From Pavona decussata (Eukaryota), in assembly GCA_977016875.1 (NCBI GenBank), contig CDRNST010000144.1, forward strand, positions 1,736,001 through 1,800,000: 64,000 nt of DNA, given 5' to 3'. The stretch's first letter is position 1. The number at the start of each line of letters is the position of its first letter. The position numbers and the translations under genes are program-made. The notes beneath the pieces are model-generated. The model searched no databases, was not told the DNA's origin, and worked only from the letters and a program-made list of their open reading frames with translations. Below, in pieces: positions 16,207 through 30,100 of the stretch.

Positions 16207-17905
16207 ATCCAGATAGATATACATAAATTTAAAACAAAATGGTATTGTATTAATATTTTCACATTCAATTAACATCTGAGTGTGGAAATGAAACTTCTCA
16301 ATAGCAAATATATAATTTTAATTCTCAATTTATTTACATAATCATAATTATTTACATAATTTTTTACATAATTATTTACATAATCATAATTTATTTTCAA
16401 TCAATTTATTTACATAATTTTAATTTGCACATTAGAAAATAATTTTCCGTCTTTTATTATATTCTAACCTGTTACCATATTTACCCATGATCATGCTCCT
16501 CCGTTTTCACTTTCTTAAGTGCCAAATTGTTGCCATATAATGTTAAGATCAGACTGTTCTTAATTCCTGTAAAAAGGGTATCTGAGGAATTGCCTTGGCA
16601 TACTCAGACATGTACAATGCTTCTTGAGGCTCAGGTTCCCTGTTAAACTGTCTATGATCGTTGTTTAGAGGGTCCTGATTGAATGCTGACGAAATGTCGA
16701 TGAATAAATGATTAGATATTGACAGAACCTTTTTGATTAAAGAATTGTTGATTATCACATACCTTGCACTCTTGTTAGAATTGTATGTTCCAGGATGGAA
16801 ACCTCTTCATACAATTGAGTAGTTGGCAACTGATCTTCCATTTCCATTTCATTCCCTGCATTAAAGTCTTCCGCAAGTTTTTGGTCAGTGATACCAAGTG
16901 CTGCCAAGTTAGCTCAGGGTTATGCAATCCTTAATAAAAGAAATCTAATAATGCAAGAATACATGTTGGGGTCGAATGGTCTTTTCGACTTGAATGAGTC
17001 ATGAACTGCTCACTATTGGCACCCTTTCAAAGTGTAGTGTAACCAAGTGTTTCAGATGCCCATTTTAATAATTTTGTAATCATAATAAATAAATATTACA
17101 AATTTGTTATTTATAATAATATCTACAGTACTATCCCACTAATGGTGCTTACCGTAATTTAGCCACTCCACAAAAGATGGATCAAGGATTCTGAGAGTGA
17201 TCTTGTGTGCCCTCTTACTTGTGACTGCAGAATCTCCTGCCTTCCTTGACCTCAGCGCCAATATAAGGGTGTTGGCATCTGAGGCAAAGGTTATCGGCTG
17301 TGACATGCCATTCACCATATTGAGTTTGTGGAGAAAACTGTCAATTTCCTAAAAGGAAGATAAAAGGGACTGGGGAAGAGCACTATGGTACACGGACATA
17401 TTCTCTGAAGTTCTACACAAAATGGTTATTTTCCTCAGCTAAATGAGTACATCTAGCAGCACTTCTGGATCAAGAAATCGATTAACAAGTTTTTAAAAGC
17501 TTTCCTTACGACAGAAGCAGTATTTCTGTACTCTTATGGGCAGAAAACGTCAGAAATAAAGATCGAGTTCATCCGTAGATGAAGATGACATGGCCGCCTC
17601 CAAGTTTAAATCTCTACAGAACTCTAAAGATAGTTTGAACAAAGTGGTGATGCACAGCTTTGCGAACATCCATACTGATATAGCAACCTCCGCTTCGAAT
17701 TTAAGACCGAAATTTAGGGGATTAAATCTACTATTAAAGATATCGAAAGAGGTTTGGAGAGCACGCCAGAAGATGTCGTGAGCGTAAAGGAGGACGTAAA
17801 AGTCACAGCAAATGCAACAATGTTCTACAGAAATGTGGATGTTTTGAACATTATACTTTCCGTGAACATGCCTTACTTTTCCTCCCCTGTCAAAAGAAAA
17901 AAAAC

Positions 17906-17977: not shown

Positions 17978-20825
17978 TGGCACTTCCTTACCTTCCTGCT
18001 TTTTGAGAGCATAATCTCTTATGTCCCCCGGGTAAATTGCTCCTATACATGTAGCATCCACTACCTGCTCTGGGTAGATGAGTGAGCTACCATCCCCAAT
18101 GCCATTGTCATGCAGCAACCAGATTTAGATATTGAATTGGATATATGTTTATCCTTTCGGAAGAGACGTCGACCAAGCAGATTTTTGAACAAACAATGAG
18201 TTAATAACAGTTAAGTTTTGTGTTTTACGTTGTCAAACTACAAAGGGGAAAAAAAGAGAGATATAGACGTTAGAGTATTTTACAGATACAGCTAACTACA
18301 GGAATTGCAAAAGGTACAAGAAAATCACTAAAACTACTTACAATTCTGGTTGCCTTCTCTTCTGACTTAATGAAGCGAGGCACCTACCTATTTATCCTTT
18401 ACAAAAATATGCGTGATATGTAAGACGCGTATCTTTTAACACGTATTTATTAGTCCTTTTACAAAGTCCCAACTTTTACATCTAAAAATATGTGCATTAT
18501 ACAAAACAGATATATTACTTTTTAGTAATAGTAGAGTGCACTGTGTTATGACCCCTCCCCTCAACAACATGAAGACACTCTCCTACACCCTTTGATTATG
18601 ATTTGTTTGATTGTTGGATTTTATTTAAATCTGTTTTCTCCTACTAAGAGACGCCAAATAAACAAATTAGGAGAACGAAATATGTGGGTCTTTCTGGAAT
18701 ACTTGTTCCTGCTCTGAAAAATGGCAGTTTGGCTCATAAATCTTATGTTATATAAGATAATTTCGACCACGTGCGCTCTACAGAGTACAAAATTTCTCAC
18801 CTTCTGGCTGCACATCCGATTTCAGTGAAATTGTTTCTCCAAGATATATTGAACAACATATCCCTCATAAAATGATGGGTATCAGGCGAATAGGAACATT
18901 TCATTCCAAAAAAGGAATATTTGACTAGCTGACTGATGTAAAGCCAGAAAATGACCTTGCTTACCGCCAGAAACGTGTACATGACACGATAAATAAATGA
19001 ACGTATTTCTTTGTTGTGAACGTTGGGTTTCCCCGACATTTCTCTCGCCTCAGCCAGCAATTGTCGTGGACGCTTTGGCAAATCAAAGCTGCAAGTTGAC
19101 ATAACAAATATTTGTGAGAATCATTCACAAGCCAGGCAAAACAAGTTTAAATAATCTCACTCACCCCAGCATTCTTACACTCTCTATGATCGGAATTAGC
19201 GCTTTGTTTAGTTTTGTTTCGAAGGAGATTTTTTGAAACAGAGTATTTGGATTAGTTTGAATTTTAATGTTCTATAAACGAAACTGAAAGTGAACTTACC
19301 AGCCACCAAAATATGGCTCTCTTGTCACACTGTTTCGCGCGAATGAGTGTGATTTCACGCGAGGTCTCATTAGGACTCCCACTGACAGAAACAAATTGTG
19401 CAAGGTTGTGGGTTCCGCTGGCTGCCACTTGAGACCGATGGCGACCTTGACGACGATATTTTAACATTGCTCACGGTGAAACCAGTAAAAAGTAAAGCCT
19501 TATGTTTTCACATAAGTTATAGATGTGTATGCCCTTTCAGATGACAGAGAATGAAGGCAGTTTTTTTTCTCGTTCACACATATGGACCACCTTAAGTGGC
19601 CATCTTTGAACATCTGAATTAACTTCTCCAGCATGGTCTTATATCCATCCTTCGAAATGTTCTCTGCATCTTTAATTGATATTGAAGGTAAAATTCCAAA
19701 TAAGCTTACTTGGTATAAGCAGGCACCAGGGGAAATAGCTTTTTGGTCAAGAACATCTGTACTAAAGACAACCACGGAGTGGTCGCAACGAAGAACCATC
19801 TTTGATATTCTTAGGAAAATTTCAAGTGCAGTTTCAATAAAATTCACAATGACCACTGAAAATTAGGGGAACACAGCCCTTTTTGTGTTAGAGTTAGAAA
19901 GGCCAAAATACAATTTTACTAACATCATCATGTTACAATGCTGACTGAGTGTATTAATATCAACGAGGAAAAATGCATTGACATGAATAAATATATATAT
20001 AAAAAAAAAAACGACTTACCGTCTATTTACTGGAAAGAAGTAATAACTGCTCTTCCATTCAAGGTATAGCCATACGGGTCATCCATTATCCTCACAGGTA
20101 GAGGAGGGACGTTGGATAATCAGATGGTAAAAGAATAGCTATGTTTGGCCTATGCACTTTAGTAAATATACATGCAAAATATATAGCTTCCAGCTAGAGC
20201 AGCAAAAGTGATATTCCCCCAAAGGCAACCAATTTATGTTCAGCAGTTTAACTATGTACACCCCTTTATTTTGGTTTAAATGCATGTATACAAGCACACC
20301 CAGTAATCACATTGAATCACGTAAATGTTCGATAAAGATGCAAAGTTAAAATCCTTCATCACATAGCATTGATTTTTGTTTGTTCTTTTGTTGGTTCAAA
20401 ATAAACAAAACCGCAACAGCTGCATCAACTGATGCAATTTTTCTTTGCACATAAAGAAATTTTGCAATGCCTGAATTTAAGTAGATGGCTTACTCAAAAG
20501 TCCATCTTCTGGGTCCAAAATAACACTGCATTCTGTCGGACATGAAGTATCCAGTTGGATTCCAGAACATCAAATTGGGGATACTGACTTTGGGCAAATG
20601 CACTGAACTCTTGAAGTGTGATTCCCGTGTCCTTGGTACTGCAAATGAAAATAATTTAAAAACTGTGCCTTTGAAAATTATGGCCATACATTATTACATG
20701 TATTACCTGGAGTTTCCTATAGAGGGATAACTATGGTAACTGAAAGATTTTGATAATTCGGCATGAAGGCAACTTTATGGGGGGCGTTTAGAGAACGACA
20801 TAATATGTTGTTATCGCAGTATATA

Positions 20826-22283
20826 CAGGGTGTTTCAAAAGTTCGTGGACACTTTTTTTAATACAAATAAATGGTAGTTTTAGGAATCCGATATTAATGA
20901 AGGTTTTCCAGTTTTATGTACATTGTTTCCTTTGACCACTGTTGAAACATCAATATCCAGAGTGCCCCCCATTGTTCTGTATAACGTTTTTGAGCCGTTG
21001 CGGCATGGAACGAGCTAGCTCCCTTAGGCTTGCTAGCAGTATGTTCCGCCAGGCTTGCCGTAACCTTGATTTTAGTCCTCCCATCGTCTTGGGGATCGGA
21101 ACTCTGTATGCAGCTTCGTCGATGATGCTCCATAGGTTTTCAATGGGGTTAAGGTCAGGTTAATTTGCTGGCCACTCATCTTTTTGGATAAAATTCGGGA
21201 GGTTTCTCTTGCACCACTGCTGTGTTGCTTTCGCCGTATGAGCTGGTGCGCCATCTTGAACGAAAGTCGCACTGCTATTGTTCGTGAAAAGCTTTCGTTT
21301 TATAGGCTCTTCTGTTGTAGATCTTCGGCTGAAAAGGGGCTTCACTTCTTTCTCAAGGATTTTTGTGATATAATACTCTGCCGTTACAGTTTGTCCTTGC
21401 GGGATGAAATGTAGGGAAGTAAGGCCGCGGCCTGTCATGCCACTCCAAACCATCCATTTGGCGCTTCCTTTAACTTGGTACGATGGCGGAACTTGACTCT
21501 CCTGTGAGCCCCATACGATATCGTTTTTAGGGTTCGGAAGATGAAAAAGGTATTTAGGGCACTCATCGCTAAGCGAAAATTTTCCCATTCATCTGCTGTA
21601 AATTTACGATATTTACGAGCGAATACTAAGCGAGCTTTCCTCTGGTTGTTGCTCAGAAGTGGAAGCTTTTTTCGTCTCAAAGGTTTCCATCCTTTTCTTG
21701 ACAGATACCTCCACACTGTTGGTGCAGATCCAGGCAGACTTTTGTTCTTCAGTTGTTTGCTGATTTTTCTTGCAGAATTTCCTCTTTTATACTTTGCTTT
21801 TTCTATAACTTTCTTTGCGGTTCTGTCAAGGACTGATGGTCGACCACTTCTTGGCTTGTCGTAAAACTCTTGTGAACTTGACCACTTCGCTACCCAGCTC
21901 TTGCTTTTTTGCAGTATTTTAGCCGTTTCTCGAACAGATACTCCAGATGATCGTAGAATTGCTGCCTGTGCTCCTAAATAGACTGCTTTTTTAGGGTTCA
22001 TAATTAGAAATTATATCAAGACGTTGAAAATCTACAGTATGTAGTTGCTACTGAAAACAAACAAAAATGGCGGGAAAGTACAGAAACACACATGACACAG
22101 ATTTGCACCTTTTGGCGGGAAAATATTTATTTCAACGAGGCTTTTTATCTGACTCATACAAAAGTTCTGAAAATCGATAAACAATAAGATTTGTTAATAT
22201 CTGCAAGAAAATGGAGAGAAATATAAGAAATCTGGACAAAGTATAGACTTTTTAAAATGTCCACGAACTTTTGAAACACCCTG
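20826..22283 (-). mobile_element. Full-length Tc1/mariner element (DD37E)
   Basis: TIRs cagggtgtttcaaaagttcgtggaca / tgtccacgaacttttgaaacaccctg; TA TSDs at 20824-20825 and 22284-22285. Confidence 0.96.
20950..22001 (-). pseudogene. DD37E transposase with one frameshift (~21575) and one stop (21160-21162)
   Basis: HTH region with KPRSGRP, SDE, MVWSGM, FVQDGAPAH, WPAN*PDLNPIENLW; 37 residues between second D and E. Confidence 0.92.
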
Positions 22284-22285
22284 TA

Positions 22286-22670
22286 TACTGTGACATTTTA
22301 GGCGACTAACTTTGGTCTGTATATTATATTATGCAACAGACGCAAATTAGGCCTGTAACTATTGGCCTAAAATGTCGCAGTATGTAGTAGGTGTTAACAT
22401 ACCGACAGCAAATAAGCCAGTAGTTACTGGCCTAAAATGTTGCAATATGTAATAAGAGTTAATATACCGACGGCAAACTGGCCTAAAATGTTGCAATATG
22501 AGTTAAAATACCGATGGAAAATAAGCCAGTAGTTACTGGCCTAAAATGTCACAGTATGTAATATAAGTGGATCCAAATTTGGCCTTTAGTTACTGGCCTA
22601 AAATGTTGCAGTATGTATTAGGAGCAGTTTCAAATTAGGCCATTAGTTACTGGCCTGAAAAGTCACATAC
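22286..22670. repeat. Short tandem array of (TAGTTACT)GGCCTAAAATGTYRCARTATGTA units
   Basis: Six direct copies (about 22364, 22429, 22480, 22538, 22595, 22652) plus one inverted copy right after the Tc1 TA. Confidence 0.8.
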
Positions 22671-22753
22671 TGGTTTATGTATACAGTTTAAACTGTACAC
22701 GCTACATCCCTTGGACGCGAGACATCTCTAAAAGTATACAGTAAATGTAGTAT

Positions 22754-22820
22754 AAAAACAGTAAATGTTCACCAATCCACATAAATTATCTATGCGGATT
22801 GGTGAACATTTATTGTTTTT
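22754..22820. repeat. 30-bp inverted repeat with 7-nt loop
   Basis: aaaaacagtaaatgttcaccaatccacata-aattatc-tatgcggattggtgaacatttattgttttt, two mismatches. Confidence 0.9.
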
Positions 22821-24180
22821 GCGTTAAAAATTAATGTGGTGCCACTGCGAGGCGCACTTCTTCTTGCAGCAGGACACCGACTTCTGATGTGGCCCAGACG
22901 GCCACAATTATAACATCTCCCTGTGAAAGAAAATAATTGAAATTAGTTTTAATTCTGGTTAATATTAGTGTATGGATTGACATACTTACTTTCTCTGTTA
23001 TGCTGCCTCGATCTTCGAGAGAACTGACGTGATCCAGCTTCTCCTCCCCTCCTGAATGCCTCATCACAAGCCTCCCTCCTTCAAGGCTCGCTTGTGACCC
23101 AGTTTAGTTCTCAGAGAATATCAGCTCGTGGCCTTGGTTCTTCTTCATTATCAGGTTCTTGATTTTCTCTTTGTGATTCTTTGTGAGCCTTCTCTCCTCC
23201 TCTGGAGTAGGCTCTGGCAAAGGAACATTGGAGGAATCCGCCAGACTATCCTGCGAGTTTTCTAAAGCCATCTAACAAAAAAAGAAAGCCATTTAATGCA
23301 ACTACAACTGGGACGCATTGAATTCCATAGGTTAATGCTCTCTTTCACATAAACAGGAAGCACAACTTTGACGTAACAAAATAATGAGACACAAACATCG
23401 ACTCATTATATTGGTCAAAACGAACAAAGTAATCTTTGTTATATGACAAAGGAGTGAGTCCCCCAGCAAGGGAATGTAAATCAGTGGAGTGAACCAATTA
23501 CTTAGACCACTAATAGGCTGATTTAGCAACAGAATGGGAACGTCAGTTGACAACGGCGGGCGCATCAAGAATACCCATACATAGTCGAAATAGACTGTTG
23601 TCCAGACTATTCCGCGAGCTCTCGCGTCCTCAAATGACATTCTCGTTCTGTTGCTAAGGAAGGAAACGATCAGGGAAAGTTTGGAGTAAATCTCACTTCA
23701 ACTTCTTGAACGAAAGAATCACCTTAAAATGGTTCCAGAATGACAATTGTTCTGAAAAATGCAGTAAAATGCAAATTATGCGACCATATAAGGTTATTTG
23801 GAATGAATACCTTTTACGGTTTCTTCAAATACTTGTTAATTTACAGATAGATATTCCAATTTTCCGACTACTGCAATTACAGGAAATTTGCTTTTTTTGA
23901 TTGGAGCACGTAATTATGACAAACATTCACGGCCAGAGTGCGTCACGCCCCTCGTGACTCAGGCAAACTAATAAGAACAAGATGCATATACTGGCATTTA
24001 CGCGTGATGCTGATTCATTTATTCCAAGTGTATGCTTCGCAGATTGATAAATGTATCCATGCTAATGGAATAGTTTGAGTCACGATGATCGGGTGATGTT
24101 GTTTTCCTTGTAGTTGTACTGGAAATCCATTAGTGATTACGATAACGTAAGCTGATAAATGAGCTCTTCTCAGTCTCATC

Positions 24181-25390
24181 GTGGTTCTACAACTGTCAAA
24201 CTACGATTTTTTCAAAGGAATTAAAGAAAGTTGTAGTTGCGTACCTGTGATGACACTAACTGCCACTGTAAGTCAGGCCCAGCTGGAGAGTTTGTGCGCT
24301 GATTATTTGAAGAATCCTGTCCTCGTTAAAAGTTCGATCAATCGTATCAACATCAAGTTGAACATGAAATCATACGTTATATCAAGGAAGAAGACGAATT
24401 CCAGTTCAGATGAAAAAACAAATAGGAAGGAAGAAATCTGGTCACAATGTGCTAAGGACAAAAAGAATATATCAGGTGAGGAATATGCCATTGTCTACAT
24501 GGATTTTTGCAGCGATGTAGAACTAATGACGTCATTACTCAAGTTGCTTTTGGGAAAAGAAAATGTTAGACCCTACTATGAAAGGGGCATGACGCCAATG
24601 TTAAGAAGAAGACTGACTCTGACTTCAGGTCAAAAGAGTTCCAAGTTTTGGTAGCCACTGAGTCATACAAGGTTGGCACACATAGTCCACACGTGGACAA
24701 TATTTTCAGGGTGGGTTGCATGCGTAACCTCAGCGTCTTAATCCAAGAATTTGGCAGAGCTGGAAGAAGTGGTAACAGTGCCAATGGTTTTCTCTTAGTC
24801 AATGAGTCAAAAGATGACCAACGCTTAGCTTACTGGACCAAAAACTGTTCAAAGATAGAAGAAGAAGAGATACAAACAATTGATTCAGTCATGGCGTTGG
24901 GCATACTCTATATACTGCGGAAGATATATGAGAGAGGAAATCATCAGGAAGTTTGGAGAAGGCCAGCTGGACTTGCAGTGTGTAGATGAATGTTGTTCCA
25001 GTTGTGATATCAAAGAGGAAAGAGATCTTAATGCAAAGCAAGCAATAAGCCTTCTTATTGAGGCGGTTTTAGACCTTGGACAAATGCAAGCTTACAAGGA
25101 AGGGGTAAAAGAGGAAGTACTAATTGGATGGCTACGAGGTAGCAAAAAACATGCATTCTCACTGCCCGTAATTAAAAAATCATGGAGCAAACACAAACAT
25201 ATTCCGCTGGTACGCAGAATTTTGGACCTAAAAGTTCTAATGGGTGGTGGTCAAGGATTTTAAGACAAGCTATCCATTTACAGTTCATTGACATAAAATA
25301 TAATAAGGTGCAACTCGTTCCCAAGAATATGGAGGTGTTACAAAGTTTCTGGAATAGGGAAACAATTCCTAGATTCTCCATATGACGTCC
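24181..25390 (+). pseudogene. RecQ-family helicase (motif III to RQC), 5'-truncated and frameshifted
   Basis: VPVMTLTAT (III), SINRINI, AIVY (IV), VATESYKVG (V), LIQEFGRAGRSG (VI), C..R...CCSSC zinc site, LIGWLRGS and WWSRILRQ winged-helix motifs. Confidence 0.85.
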
Positions 25391-25525
25391 TCGTTTTGGA
25401 TCCAAGAAACGATCCGCTAGACCAAAAAGTAAAGGAGAAGAGGGTTGCCACTACAGCAAGGACTGGGAGAGGGCATCATCATCTTCCAACAATAAAGGAA
25501 TTCTTGAGAAGATCAACAAATTGAG

Positions 25526-27130
25526 TTGAAAAACAAGTCCCAGTACGAATTCCCAGGTTTCAACGCAGACTCTGAGACCAAGCAAAGAAGCTTTGCCCTC
25601 ATAAAAGATTGTAGAAAGTTTGAGTTCGCCCCCAGTAGTCGACCTCACTTTATTTGGGACGATAATCAGGTTTCCAAACGAGGCACGCAAACAGCAAAGC
25701 ACAACATAGCTATTGATGGTGTGAATACCTTAGTAAACGTGAAAAGAGGGCCCTGTGAAGGAGTAAAGAAGTATACTGGCCCTGACTGTTCCTACGTTGT
25801 CTCTAACAGACAAAAGGTGAATCGATGGGTACATCTCAAAGGCAGCTTTTCTCTCGTTTTCACTGTAGCATGTCCCACGCACATGGTTTACATATGGCCA
25901 TCCTGTGATGATGGAAGGCGATGGATTGGGGTTGTGCCAGGCACAAAACACTATCGCTCTACACCAGCACCACATATCTTGTCGAGCAAAGTCAAAGAAG
26001 ACATCCAAAAAGTGGTATCTGATGATAGTACTAAAACTAGTTAAGATATCATGAAAGGGTATGGACTTGGTTATGTCCCCGCTGAAGCCAGTTCACCTGC
26101 AGCCAACGCTGACCGTGTCAGGCGGGAGAGGAAGATGGCGCTTGGTAAATGGACATCTTGTCATAAAGAACTTCGTCCACTAGATGAGTTTCTTGGATTT
26201 GAGAACATTAGGAAAAAAGTGGAAGGCAACCAGTTTTGTGATGAAAACATGAATATCAGCGAACAAGTTAACAAAATGATGGGACAGTATCAGATGGAAG
26301 GAGGTGAGTATATTTTCACGCCTTCTAGGAAGTATGTGTTCTTTATGTCGCCATTTCAATCATCTATTTTGAGTAAAGCAGAAGACCTATTCATGGATGT
26401 GACCTACAGTGGTAATGACGTTTTTCCATACCTCCTCAACATTGTAACTTTCAATGAATAAACGTACATGTATAACGCGGTCGCTAGGGTCATGTGCAGT
26501 AGGCAAGATAGCGAGACATATGCAAACTCGATAACCTCGATTTTCAATAAGGTTTTTAGGGATCACACCCATTTTATGAATGGCATAAATTTGAGGTCTA
26601 TACTCGTGGACTTCGACGATGCATAATACAAAGGACTAAAACAATGCATCGGTGACGAACTGGCCAGGAAAGTCATACGAGGATGCAGTGTTCATTGGCA
26701 ACGATCGGTCAATAGAGTTTGTAAGTTGGTTTGCCAAAGCGAGGCTGAATCGCGTTTCTTTAAATCCCTAGCTCTCAATATTGAACAAGAAACAGATAAA
26801 GAGAATGTGTACTTGATTTTCAATGTACTATCGGGCTCCAGAAAACTACAGGATGCCAAGGCGTTGATTGATACAGACCTGTCTTCTTCACTTGACAAGC
26901 TTGATAACCAAAACTGGAAAAAACTAAAGCATTGGAGCAGATGGTGGTGTCGGTTAAATCACCTAGCAATGTTTACAAGGGCCTTTAAGGAAATGAAAGA
27001 CAAGGATTGCGAACAGGGACCATGTACCACCAATCCAGTTGAAGCATTGAATCGATAATCATTGCAAGAGGGGTGCACTGTTCTTCATACGTTGATGGAG
27101 AACATTTTCCATGAAGATCGCTTACAGGCA
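25526..27130 (+). pseudogene. GCM-like zinc domain plus MULE/Mutator-type DDE transposase
   Basis: CEGVKK..PDC...CPTHMVYIW...RRWIG...H..TPAPH (GCM/WRKY-like); LFMDVTY, ILVDFDDA, GCSVHWQRSV (CxxH), CTTNPVEALNR; several stops; cut at about 27133 by a MITE-like insertion. Confidence 0.8.
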
Positions 27131-30100
27131 GTTAGGGATCGGTCATTATTTATCACCTGGGGGGGAGGATTTGGGGTTGAACACGATAAAATTAACAGTT
27201 GAGGCAATCGTAGCACAATTTATCACACCTGTGCGAGGATATGAAACTTGTCACAAATCCGTGATCTCCAGTTCTAAGAAAAAAAAGTTGCTATGAAGAA
27301 ACAAGCTTCAGTTGTATTTCTCGATGTAAATTGAATCTGTTTTCCTTTTTCTTCAGGGAGACTTTCAAATGGAGGAGGGTAGCTTTCCTTCACACCATGT
27401 TCAGCCCGAAACTGACCCGGGGATTAACTTGGTACCCGATATGCAAACGGTAAGCTACAGTGCAATTTATTTATTTATTTTTAGTTTCAGGTTGCTTGAA
27501 TTGAATGATATTCCTTCTCTGATCTCTGAAGACTCCAGTTCATATAATGTGCAAGTGTTGTAAATTATAAACTAAAAACACGCCTGTTATTCCAGGAGAT
27601 AGCTAAATCTATTGTTGTGGTGGATTATTTCTATTGGAGTGTACTTCTCCTGGAGGTCTGGCCGCCTAGAAAGCTTCCTTGACTTGTATATGTCCCATTG
27701 CAATTACCAGACGTGTTATGTTTATACATGGTATCTGTGTAACGTGGTGTTATTATTGTTTTATTGGATGAAAAATATATAAATCTATGAAAATGAGGGA
27801 AAGTGGAATGTTGTTGTTGCTAGCTCTCCATAACTTGTGTTTGTTCTTTATTCTAACATTTGAGACTGAAGCGTTTCTGATGCAACTATTTCAGGTCAAC
27901 ACTGAATCAGATGTAGCAAACAACAGCATAGCTGCTACTTCACATTCATTTGCATCAAGAGGAACACAAGAGCCTATTCCTCCATTGAGGCCTTACCAAG
28001 AAGCCCAAGATAGAACCAAAAGGGCCATACGTTAAGAAATAATTGAGACAATTAAGACAGTGGCGATGAAGTATGTACACTTTGAACCTGGACCACCTTT
28101 GATAAAACTAATGGAGGACATTGTGCAAAGTAGAAATTGGCAGCAAACATTTGGCTTTTCATTGCTACAACAACCATTTCATGAAAAAGCGATTTTCTGC
28201 GAACCTTAGCAAAGGAGTACAAGGCATGTAAGGACAAAGAGTCTACCAAACAAGTCAAGGACAATGCTAAGTTACAAAAACAGAAACTTTTGATTGGCAA
28301 TACAAAGACACAAAGCAAAATTGCTATAATTAGAGATACCCCCCTGGATGTAAACTCAAGGGTTGCAGCAGCCAAAAGGCTTGGCAGAATTCGTCACTAT
28401 GGGGACGAGAAACGAAGATTGCTTTCAATTGTGGCCCATGACTACCCATACACTTTTCTGCAAAATTTGTTTCAATGTTCCCCAAATACTATCACGGCAG
28501 CAAGAGTCCATGCTATCCTGTTTGGATGTCGTGGTGTTCCACCAAGTGAGTTTAAATTCAGCAGGCAGCGAGTAAGTTCAAAAACATAAGAAGAACTGAC
28601 AATTTCTTAATTGTGATGCCATTGCCAGAGCATCATCATGTCGGGGAGTCTTGGTTGATGGCAAAGAAACTGCTGTACGTTATTGGCAAGACTCCCTGAA
28701 GAGCATTGTACAGCAGTACCTTTTGGTAAACCCCAACAGTGTCAAGAGGACATTTATTTACACACACCTACCACAGAACTTTCGCATGAACACCATGCTT
28801 GCAGGACTGTGTAATTTGTGTGACAGTTACGGTCATACAAACTTTGATCTGATGTGTGAGCTTCCTCATGAAATTGCCAACCTGGGAGGAGAAGCAACCA
28901 ACATTGACTCTGCTTCTGTGGCAAGGCAGTTGAGGAACCACCAAACATTAGCAGAAAGTTAGCAGAAAGGCATTCTTCATGTTTGGAACTTTGCCTTACC
29001 CATGCTTTTGGTACTTGTTCAGAAGAACACCCTGATAGCCTACATGAAATGACAGGGTTTTATGTGGCTTGTGACAATCTTACATCAGCCCTCCAGGAAT
29101 CATCCAGTGGGGTTGCAAAAGAAAAGCTCAACCAGAAACTTCAAAAAACTGTCAACACCCATTGGGATTATGTCTCCCACCTCTTGCGCACAAAGCATCA
29201 AACAGACTATTACTAATACGTCCTGAAAAACTTGAAGCCTGGTGAGTGTGTTGTAGTAGTTGTCTACAAGATGAAGTTGGAATTAGGAAAGCGAACACGG
29301 GAGAATCAAAGGGAAGAGGGGCATCTCACTCCATGGGTTCTATGTTACTGCTCAAGTATTGCCAGACCAGGGATCTGCTGAGGTGATAGACCTATGGAGT
29401 AAGGACACAAAACAAGACACCTGGTGTATTCAGAGTGCCCTTGATGTTGGTTTTCACTGGCTTGAGACTGCATTCCAGGATTCAAGGTCTATTTGTTCTC
29501 TGGTAAGTGATATCTCTCACACCAGTTACTGAAGGTGGGCATATACAAGGGTGTAAAAGTTGATTGCTACAAGTACATGTAAAGGAGAGTTGCATTGTAT
29601 ACCTCACTGCTATGAGAGGACTTGTTTGAAGGGAAGTTTGGTTTGTTTCTCATACTGCAGCTATTACTTGTTTCTTGACGAGTAAGAAGTCCTTTTACTT
29701 TTCTCTTTAAATCAAAGGAATGTAAAATAATTGAATGTGCATACAAAGGTAGTTCTTGTTGTGCATCAGCTTTATTGGTCCTAATTATACACACATATTT
29801 CCAATGTTTCTTCATGCTTGTCCATTGTATATGTACCTAATATATCCAGTCACTGTTTCTGAGTGAATAAGAAAATTATTGAACCACAACAGAAATATTT
29901 AAAGGTGTACAGACTGCATAAAATTATGGTCCAAAATTGATACTTCAAACAGTAACACAAATGAAAGTATATTAGTTTGATGCTGTGAAAGAACATGGTC
30001 TCTAAATTTAGAGCTCACATATTTTTATTATTATTTTATTTTATTTGCAGACAATGGACCGCATTACCACAACACCAGTTTCTTGGCTTAATTGGCTGAA

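Follow-up and report, generated by a model that had tools for sequence, protein, structure and literature searches.

A probable Mutator-like DNA transposon in Pavona decussata whose relatives carry a RecQ-family helicase and a DDE transposase in one reading frame

RecQ helicases are known as cargo of Academ transposons (PMC3627910, PMC10045372), and AcademH is described as a helicase-encoding Academ lineage (Kojima 2020, cited in PMC10045372 and PMC10799480) with a target-site duplication of 9-10 bp (PMC10045372). The RNase H-like domains of Academ were reported to show no detectable similarity to any Pfam domain (PMC5751038), and Academ is not listed among the superfamilies with a C/DxxH signature (PMC9587614). 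This signature is found in Kolobok, of which one lineage, KolobokH, reported from fungi alone, encodes RecQ on the downstream side of the transposase (PMC9587614). The present analysis deals with a stretch of 64,000 nucleotides (nt) of Pavona decussata (assembly GCA_977016875.1, contig CDRNST010000144.1, positions 1,736,001-1,800,000, forward strand), denoted here as the window, of which positions 20781-27134 are probably what is left of a large cut-and-paste DNA transposon of the Mutator-like type (MuDR/MULE superfamily), now dead. Mutator-like elements usually generate target-site duplications of 8-11 bp; since this range covers the 9-10 bp given for AcademH, the duplication would not separate the two. 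Judged from their sequences, intact relatives of the window copy encode in one frame of ~1,450-1,950 amino acids (aa) a putative kinase, a protease (in one lineage), a RecQ helicase, a WRKY/GCM1 finger, a MULE-type DDE core, and a Tudor/Agenet-like tail.

Of the element, the window copy retains the 5' terminal inverted repeat and the subterminal 57-bp repeats; an internal block reaching from the kinase to helicase motif II is gone, and so is the 3' third. Its parts are the following:

20781..20825, plus strand: outer 5' terminal sequence, i.e. the outer part of the terminal inverted repeat, beginning GGGGCGTTTAGAG...
20826..22283, minus strand: nested Tc1/mariner-like insertion, which splits the terminal sequence and is not part of the element
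22284..22667, plus strand: rest of the terminal sequence and a degenerate subterminal array of 50-57-bp repeats, each with a near-palindrome of the GCCAGTAGTTACTGGC type in it
22668..23959, plus strand: 5' internal non-coding region of the element, containing a MITE-like insertion of ~150 bp (~23508-23657)
23960..24201, unstranded: unrelated high-copy repeat (>40 copies) at the joint of the internal deletion
24196..25390, plus strand: relic of the RecQ-family helicase (motifs III-VI, zinc-binding part, RQC/winged helix), lying in three frames
25391..25560, plus strand: linker from helicase to zinc domain (..GRGHHHLPTIKEFL..YEFPGF..), with a 5-bp deletion at ~25523
25561..26041, plus strand: WRKY/GCM1-type zinc DNA-binding domain, with invariant C/H columns and fold matches
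26042..27134, plus strand: MULE-like DDE core with four in-frame stops and an abrupt end at 27134

The coding relic is represented in the list of open reading frames (ORFs) by a series of short plus-strand ORFs with changing frame (24181-27202), in whose translations the linker and the core motifs named in the initial annotation of the window are found (...RTGRGHHHLPTIKEFL..., ...YEFPGF..., FMDVTYSGND, ILVDFDDA, RGCSVHW, and TTNPVEALNR). In a DNA search of the window's own assembly (602 Mb), similarity begins at 24196 (not at 24181) and ends at 27134; both positions are breaks of the window copy itself. Between them, RecQ motifs III-VI and RQC are followed by the linker, by a zinc domain of the GCM/WRKY type, and by a DDE core with the D of DVTYSG, the D of VDFDD, C-x-x-H, and the E of TTNPVE. 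Position 24196 had also been considered as a 5' end common to the family, as three copies 'started' there, and was rejected in this role because the copy on contig C20 continues upstream. Compared with the C20 copy, the relic has suffered five frameshifting deletions (near 24596, 24876, 25174, 25303, and 25523), four of which sit in the helicase part, and carries in-frame TAA codons at 26042, 26459, and 26624; a fourth in-frame stop (27059) directly follows TTNPVEALNR. These five deletions and four stops agree with the initial annotation, in which a helicase, broken up by frameshifts and stops, ran through a linker into a zinc domain followed by a DDE core. In the numbering of the C20 reading frame, translated across its single TAG as X, the window copy covers residues 688-1533 only. 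Helicase motifs I-II, everything N-terminal of these, and approximately the last 140 residues are missing, and a search for further gene pieces elsewhere in the 64-kb window yielded none. The window copy is a pseudogene fragment, and its match to paralogous proteins (tblastn, E = 0) lies far outside what chance would give. Among its own ORF pieces, Pfam detects only a weak Helicase_C (4e-4) and RQC (0.12), which lie where RecQ motifs III-VI and an RQC domain had initially been placed; these motifs are present.

In the assembly, the relic belongs to a low-copy family. The DNA search gave 94% identity to the window copy for the C20 copy and 91-93% for C117; partial copies show 93-95% (C359, C233) and 80-87% (C90). 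Directly after the 3' break of the relic follows a low-copy repeat (27207-28600) that differs from the element, shows 90% identity to C273:3197444-3198743, and has pieces also at C20:5136006-5139742. Several ORFs of 70-100 aa at 28290-29216 have no Pfam matches.

The initial annotation had postulated a helicase-transposase of more than 1000 aa, and such reading frames are indeed found: one frame spans the DExH helicase, RQC, the GCM-like finger, and the DDE core in the copies on contigs C80 and C20 and in other assemblies. The protein search of the genome suggested there, carried out with two pieces of the window as queries, yielded ~20 loci each, several within long open frames, and places the junction in uninterrupted frames. 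The paralogue on C80 is a 1917-aa frame with no stop, of which 1667 aa were read (the first ~250 aa lie outside this reading). It shows, in this order, the end of the kinase, a middle domain, a complete helicase (PTGSGKS, DEIH, QEFGRAGR), the linker (GRGCHHLPKIR...YEFPGF), a Cys/His-rich domain, the DDE core (DITYTG, VDFDDAE, GCQVHW, TTNPVESINR), and a C-terminal tail. The C20 copy is near-intact, with 838 + 707 aa in one frame interrupted by a single TAG (1546 aa). A younger subfamily with the domain order of C80 occupies at least seven loci (C82, C204, C8, C129, C80:1.36 Mb, C245, and C261). Its members on C82 (L052/L061, 1854558-1859528) and C204 (L053/L066, 54323-59272) differ in few residues over ~1,650 aa; these young copies are nearly identical, yet already carry different stops. 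In both copies, the two that were read, the frame breaks at the identical point after VDYSDAQIQG, probably at a short intron, and the exons on either side were kept unjoined in all searches.

Outside this genome, a word-indexed search retrieved 21 proteins. Pkinase and/or DEAD plus Helicase_C, followed by the shared C-terminal module, occur in P0013 (1746 aa), P0016 (1713 aa), P0017 (1745 aa), P0007 (1707 aa), P0011, P0012, P0005, and P0020, and the fusion layout recurs in P0023 (1450 aa), which came from an exhaustive profile search. The linker is conserved in all aligned homologues. As the proteins from other assemblies that share it are only 34-50% identical to C80, the fusion must be old. 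A locus in another public assembly (L068), with ~83% DNA identity to the C20 copy, encodes four collinear ORFs (263 + 729 + 709 + 254 aa) and allows substitution rates to be compared between the halves. The synonymous rate (dS) between the C20 copy and L068 is 0.63 in both the helicase and the transposase half, and the ratio of nonsynonymous to synonymous rates (dN/dS) amounts to 0.17 in the C-terminal part of the helicase with RQC, to 0.15 in the part made up of zinc finger and DDE core, and to 0.22 in the upstream part comprising kinase, protease, and helicase N-terminus. Both halves are under purifying selection of equal strength and age, and because their dS is equal and their dN/dS similar, they have evolved as one coding unit.

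These data bear on the possibility that a RecQ pseudogene and an unrelated MULE relic merely lie next to or within each other and never formed a common gene. The window copy itself could suggest this, as its halves lie in different frames with many breaks, and an annotated coral protein of 759 aa (P0010) possesses the transposase module without a helicase. The frame changes of the window copy, however, come down to five small deletions when it is compared with a copy of 94% identity, the junction and linker occur in uninterrupted frames of C80, C20, C82, C204, and the diverged proteins of other assemblies, and both halves share the same dS. P0010 groups in the alignment with P0005 and P0007; since these neighbours carry the helicase, it probably represents an incomplete gene model or a copy that has been truncated. 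The initial annotation had named RecQ and MULE as separate elements in intact copies as speaking against a fusion; in C80, C20, C82, and C204, the halves are joined. A chance neighbourhood is thus extremely improbable.

The helicase can be assigned to the RecQ family by its predicted superfamily 2 (SF2) motifs I, II (DExH), and VI together with C-terminal zinc and winged-helix parts. A phmmer comparison of the C80 protein with all sequences of the Protein Data Bank (PDB) returned bacterial RecQ (4tmu, 1e-35, chain residues 39-503 of 541), followed by WRN, BLM, RECQ1, and RECQ5 (1e-35 to 1e-24 overall), with DEAD-box RNA helicases far weaker; the alignment to RecQ structures extends through the zinc and winged-helix parts. 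Within the 1667 aa read from C80, the counterpart of the window relic is formed by residues 555-996, a region that matches RecQ/WRN/BLM structures with 1e-35 to 1e-30. In Pfam, C80 matches DEAD (1.9e-27) and Helicase_C (4.4e-14), and sub-threshold matches to RQC (0.006) and RecQ_Zn_bind (0.17) lie at the expected places. With the cellular enzymes (bacterial RecQ, WRN, BLM, RECQ1, RECQ5), the helicase of the element shares motifs I-VI, the zinc-binding part, and the winged helix; it differs from them in being embedded in a transposase polyprotein and in the sub-threshold level of its RQC and RecQ_Zn_bind matches. Neither an HRDC nor an exonuclease domain was detected in it.

Further parts predicted for the full protein are a kinase, which Pfam identifies as a standard Pkinase, a Tudor/Agenet-like tail, and, in one lineage, a herpes-tegument-like cysteine protease. 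In the C20 copy, the kinase is split into two ORFs ~4 kb apart (L021:3200-7240, i.e. C20:1663199-1667239) by an insert that is absent from L068, contains a 236-aa ORF with weak Myb/SANT/MADF-like matches (6e-5), and is probably another inserted element. The middle domain, filling the gap between kinase and helicase in the lineage of C80, C20, and P0013, has no match in Pfam. It resembles Herpes_teg_N cysteine proteases in features (0.91-0.92, 193 shared features) and shows a GSNAC...DTH pattern in C80 (L055:1-3600, minus strand, residues 95-345); the young subfamily (C82, C204) and P0016 lack it. In the tail, weak Agenet matches occur in eight of the 15 members of the alignment.

This alignment also defines the catalytic core. 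D302, D373/D375, and C398-x-x-H401 are invariant, the E of TTNPVES is nearly so, and C398 lies 25 residues after D373 (RGCSVHW being the equivalent in the window). Pfam MULE (PF10551) matches the segment from the first to the second D in C80, C20, P0023, P0037, and six of the 15 alignment members, and altogether in ~9 of ~25 proteins scanned (E 1.2e-4 to 1.2e-2); no other transposase family ever matched in the Pfam scans of these proteins. Language-model neighbours of the core in the ESM Atlas are MULE/FLYWCH/SWIM clusters (0.89-0.94). An AlphaFold (AF2) model of the core (pLDDT 71) adopts an RNase H-like fold at residues ~292-556, and its top PDB match in Foldseek is ISCth4, a transposase of the IS256 family (E 3e-4, probability 1.0). 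IS256 is the bacterial sister group of Mutator. A second aligner (VIA) gave Z 8.1 over 217 residues for ISCth4 and Z 7.0 for Hermes. In a shape search of the Atlas, eight of ten rows carry PF10551 MULE, several of them also FAR1, SWIM, or ZSWIM1-3, with 216-298 residues aligned; the remaining two rows are clusters of the SWIM type that share no common Pfam family. In the transposase of the element itself, a SWIM finger was not detected. Searching PDB sequences with a profile of the core gave no match. At E <= 0.001, an exhaustive profile search of 1.84 billion proteins returned 1109 cluster representatives, of which 477 also pass E <= 1e-10 and most are fragments; the best 150 of these matches were fragments of the own family, with no bridge to classical MULEs. 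Taken together, the recurrent sub-threshold MULE matches, the invariant C-x-x-H, ISCth4 as top structure, and the MULE rows of the Atlas support the Mutator-type core of the initial annotation.

Directly upstream of the core lies the zinc domain, with C, C, C, C, H, C, and N-H as invariant columns of the alignment. Its AF2 model, folded alone (pLDDT 76), was aligned exhaustively to 48,161 PDB representative chains, where the GCM domain 1odh ranks first (Z 5.4, 99 of 121 residues aligned) and AtWRKY1 second (Z 5.0); further WRKY domains occupy ranks 5, 6, and 11, and FLYWCH rank 20. Foldseek gave no matches for this domain alone, and the ranking stems from the exhaustive aligner only. The GCM-like zinc domain postulated initially thus has GCM and WRKY folds as its best matches. 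Such a layout, with a finger of WRKY/GCM1 fold immediately ahead of a MULE core, is classical for Mutator/FAR1.

Comparison with the described systems follows from these domains. Mutator-like elements with a WRKY/GCM1-FAR1-type domain share with the present family the C-x-x-H DDE core, weak PF10551 matches, IS256/MULE/FAR1 structural neighbours, a zinc domain of WRKY/GCM1 fold immediately preceding the core, long inverted ends, and fused accessory enzymatic domains. In contrast to them, the element encodes in frame a RecQ-family helicase in complete form together with a kinase and a Tudor/Agenet-like tail, and no SWIM finger was detected in it. AcademH, as described, is likewise an animal/fungal DDE cut-and-paste transposon with a RecQ-type DEAD/Helicase_C, of low copy number and large size. 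The window copy could accordingly be ascribed to an AcademH element whose Academ transposase only resembles that of Mutator, all the more as a RecQ helicase is documented in Academ (PMC3627910, PMC10045372). Against this, MULE is the only transposase family that matches, while Academ domains are reported without Pfam similarity (PMC5751038). The core of the element differs from AcademH, as described, in having C/DxxH and MULE/IS256 neighbours. The structural neighbours are IS256 and MULE/FAR1, and the WRKY/GCM1 finger stands upstream of the core, as in Mutator-like transposases; an AcademH origin is regarded as unlikely.

A Kolobok-superfamily transposase accompanied by RecQ, i.e. an element of the KolobokH type, would account for a RecQ helicase encoded together with a C/DxxH DDE transposase, both being features of that superfamily and its RecQ-encoding lineage (PMC9587614). 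The arrangement differs, with RecQ downstream and a fungal host there (PMC9587614), and RecQ upstream of a MULE-like DDE core in every long frame, and an animal host, here. The THAP domain was not found by Pfam in the proteins of the element, and the structural and feature neighbours are all MULE, none Kolobok; this assignment is very improbable.

That the gene belongs to a mobile element with the signatures of Mutator is indicated by its ends and copies. A terminal sequence common to at least 13 other genomic loci begins, in all matches, within window positions 20781-20786. In the window, it consists of 20781-20825 and the sequence from 22284 onward, interrupted by the Tc1/mariner-like insertion (20826-22283), which is bounded by perfect 25-bp inverted repeats and flanked by a duplicated TA (20824-25 and 22284-85); once it is removed, the terminal sequence is that found in L068. 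A minus-strand ORF within the insertion (21435-22001, 188 aa) matches HTH_Tnp_Tc3_2 (4e-11), and the DDE part of such an insertion was not seen in the ORF list. Tandem Repeats Finder (TRF) detects a period of 57 at 22518-22667, and this subterminal array matches 57-bp arrays beside other copies as well as inverted arrays at the opposite end of the element. The following region (22668-~24000) shows 76-81% identity to DNA ~3.5 kb upstream of the first kinase ORF of the C20 copy (C20:1659011) and to loci on C45, C195, and C90, two short 3' segments at C45 reaching 88-90%. It contains at ~23508-23657 (query positions 841-990) a separate high-copy repeat of ~150 bp with dozens of copies at 89-94%, the ends of which match in reverse orientation, and which looks like a miniature inverted-repeat element inserted in the 5' region. 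The repeat at 23960-24201 (~200-240 bp), with 88-95% identity among its copies and unrelated flanks, sits exactly at the joint of the internal-block deletion.

On the other side of the gene, the terminal sequence and the satellite recur in inverted orientation downstream in L068, with the terminus at 16578; its inverted partner was not found in the 10 kb upstream. The inverted terminal sequence is also present in C233, C359, and C20, with 100% identity over 110 bp and unrelated DNA beyond. A terminal sequence of ~80 bp with 57-bp arrays thus lies in opposite orientations at either side of the gene. The sole relative with both end arrays in view is L067, from which P0013 comes: a 54-bp array (1022-2914) and an inverted one (20171-21437), forming 1.3-kb inverted arrays of 92% identity, flank the gene ~20 kb apart. 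The 3' non-coding part of this locus also contains a 3.6-kb array of 74-bp repeats (L067:16155-19747), distinct from the 54-bp terminal arrays. In C233 and C359, the 5' array abuts gene position 26246, and these two copies look like internally deleted derivatives. The shared discrete terminus, the inverted end arrays, the deletion derivatives, and the young near-identical copies indicate that the family is a transposon.

The same features have to be set against a host gene family, in which a domesticated Mutator-type transposase joined to RecQ, kinase, and Tudor domains would serve DNA repair or chromatin and of which the window would hold a pseudogene duplicate. The intact 1917-aa frame of C80, purifying selection across assemblies, the low copy number, and the conserved probable intron of one subfamily would fit such a family. 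It does not explain why at least 13 loci share a terminal sequence with the same start base, why inverted satellite arrays flank the gene in two lineages, why internally deleted derivatives retain the ends, or why near-identical young copies lie on different contigs, many of them already broken; all DDE residues are retained as well. A host gene family is decidedly improbable, and individual copies such as C80 could be domesticated.

Several points weigh against the assignment to a Mutator-like transposon. The initial annotation had proposed that termini and target-site duplication be defined: a discrete terminus lies at 20781-20786, and no target-site duplication could be read at any copy, there being no matching flanks at C233 or L067 and no two undamaged ends in the copies examined. 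PF10551 does not reach its gathering score, the best matches having 16.5-21.9 bits against a cut-off of 27.6. The structural Z-scores are modest (~8 for the core and ~5 for the zinc domain), and retroviral integrase cores, with Z ~8 over ~110 residues, equal the score of ISCth4 over fewer residues. The element is set apart from Academ only indirectly, through published descriptions of that superfamily. Transcription is thinly covered: two runs, guessed to be RNA, each give one short low-depth contig on the C80 gene. One 231-nt contig with 100% identity spans the junction of RQC, linker, and zinc finger in C80 (run guessed to be RNA); such short contigs are a hint of expression of this gene, not proof. 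The roles of helicase, kinase, protease, and tail set out below are all ones that we infer.

For the Mutator-like transposon proposed here, the zinc domain would bind to the near-palindromes that recur in the subterminal arrays; cutting and rejoining the ends of the element would fall to the DDE core. The covalently attached RecQ helicase may then act in cis on the transposition intermediate, either by opening the ends, which are long, rich in repeats, and prone to form hairpins, or by directing how the vacated donor site is repaired. Kinase and protease might modulate the damage or ubiquitin signalling of the host, and chromatin at the targets might be read by the Tudor-like tail.

A full-text search for RecQ together with MuDR or MULE found no paper describing a RecQ-bearing Mutator-like element (Repbase was outside its scope), which is in line with the initial annotation, where the fusion was not recognised as described. 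No published description of the combination of RecQ with a Mutator-type transposase was found, the known RecQ-bearing DDE transposons being the Academ and Kolobok lineages. It is tentatively proposed, at somewhat less than even confidence, that the family represents a third, independent recruitment of RecQ by DDE transposons, this time within the Mutator superfamily, where the helicase shares its frame with the transposase, a kinase, a protease resembling deubiquitinases, and a Tudor-like reader. End binding, the cut-and-paste reaction, unwinding or repair of the intermediate, and signalling to the host would then all be functions of one polypeptide, in a lineage that would be old, widespread in marine invertebrates, and uncatalogued.

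DNA transposons have repeatedly acquired helicases, e.g. Pif1 in Helitrons and RecQ in Academ and Kolobok, and helicase-bearing DDE transposons thus already exist in two other superfamilies. A Mutator-type lineage with RecQ fused upstream of the binding and catalytic domains would offer a convenient test case for what a helicase contributes to a DDE cut-and-paste reaction. In genome annotation, loci of this kind should not be labelled as host RecQ or kinase genes. With a kinase, a protease, and a Tudor-like domain added to the helicase, the family suggests that large transposons of invertebrates may assemble whole toolkits to deal with the DNA-damage and chromatin systems of their hosts.

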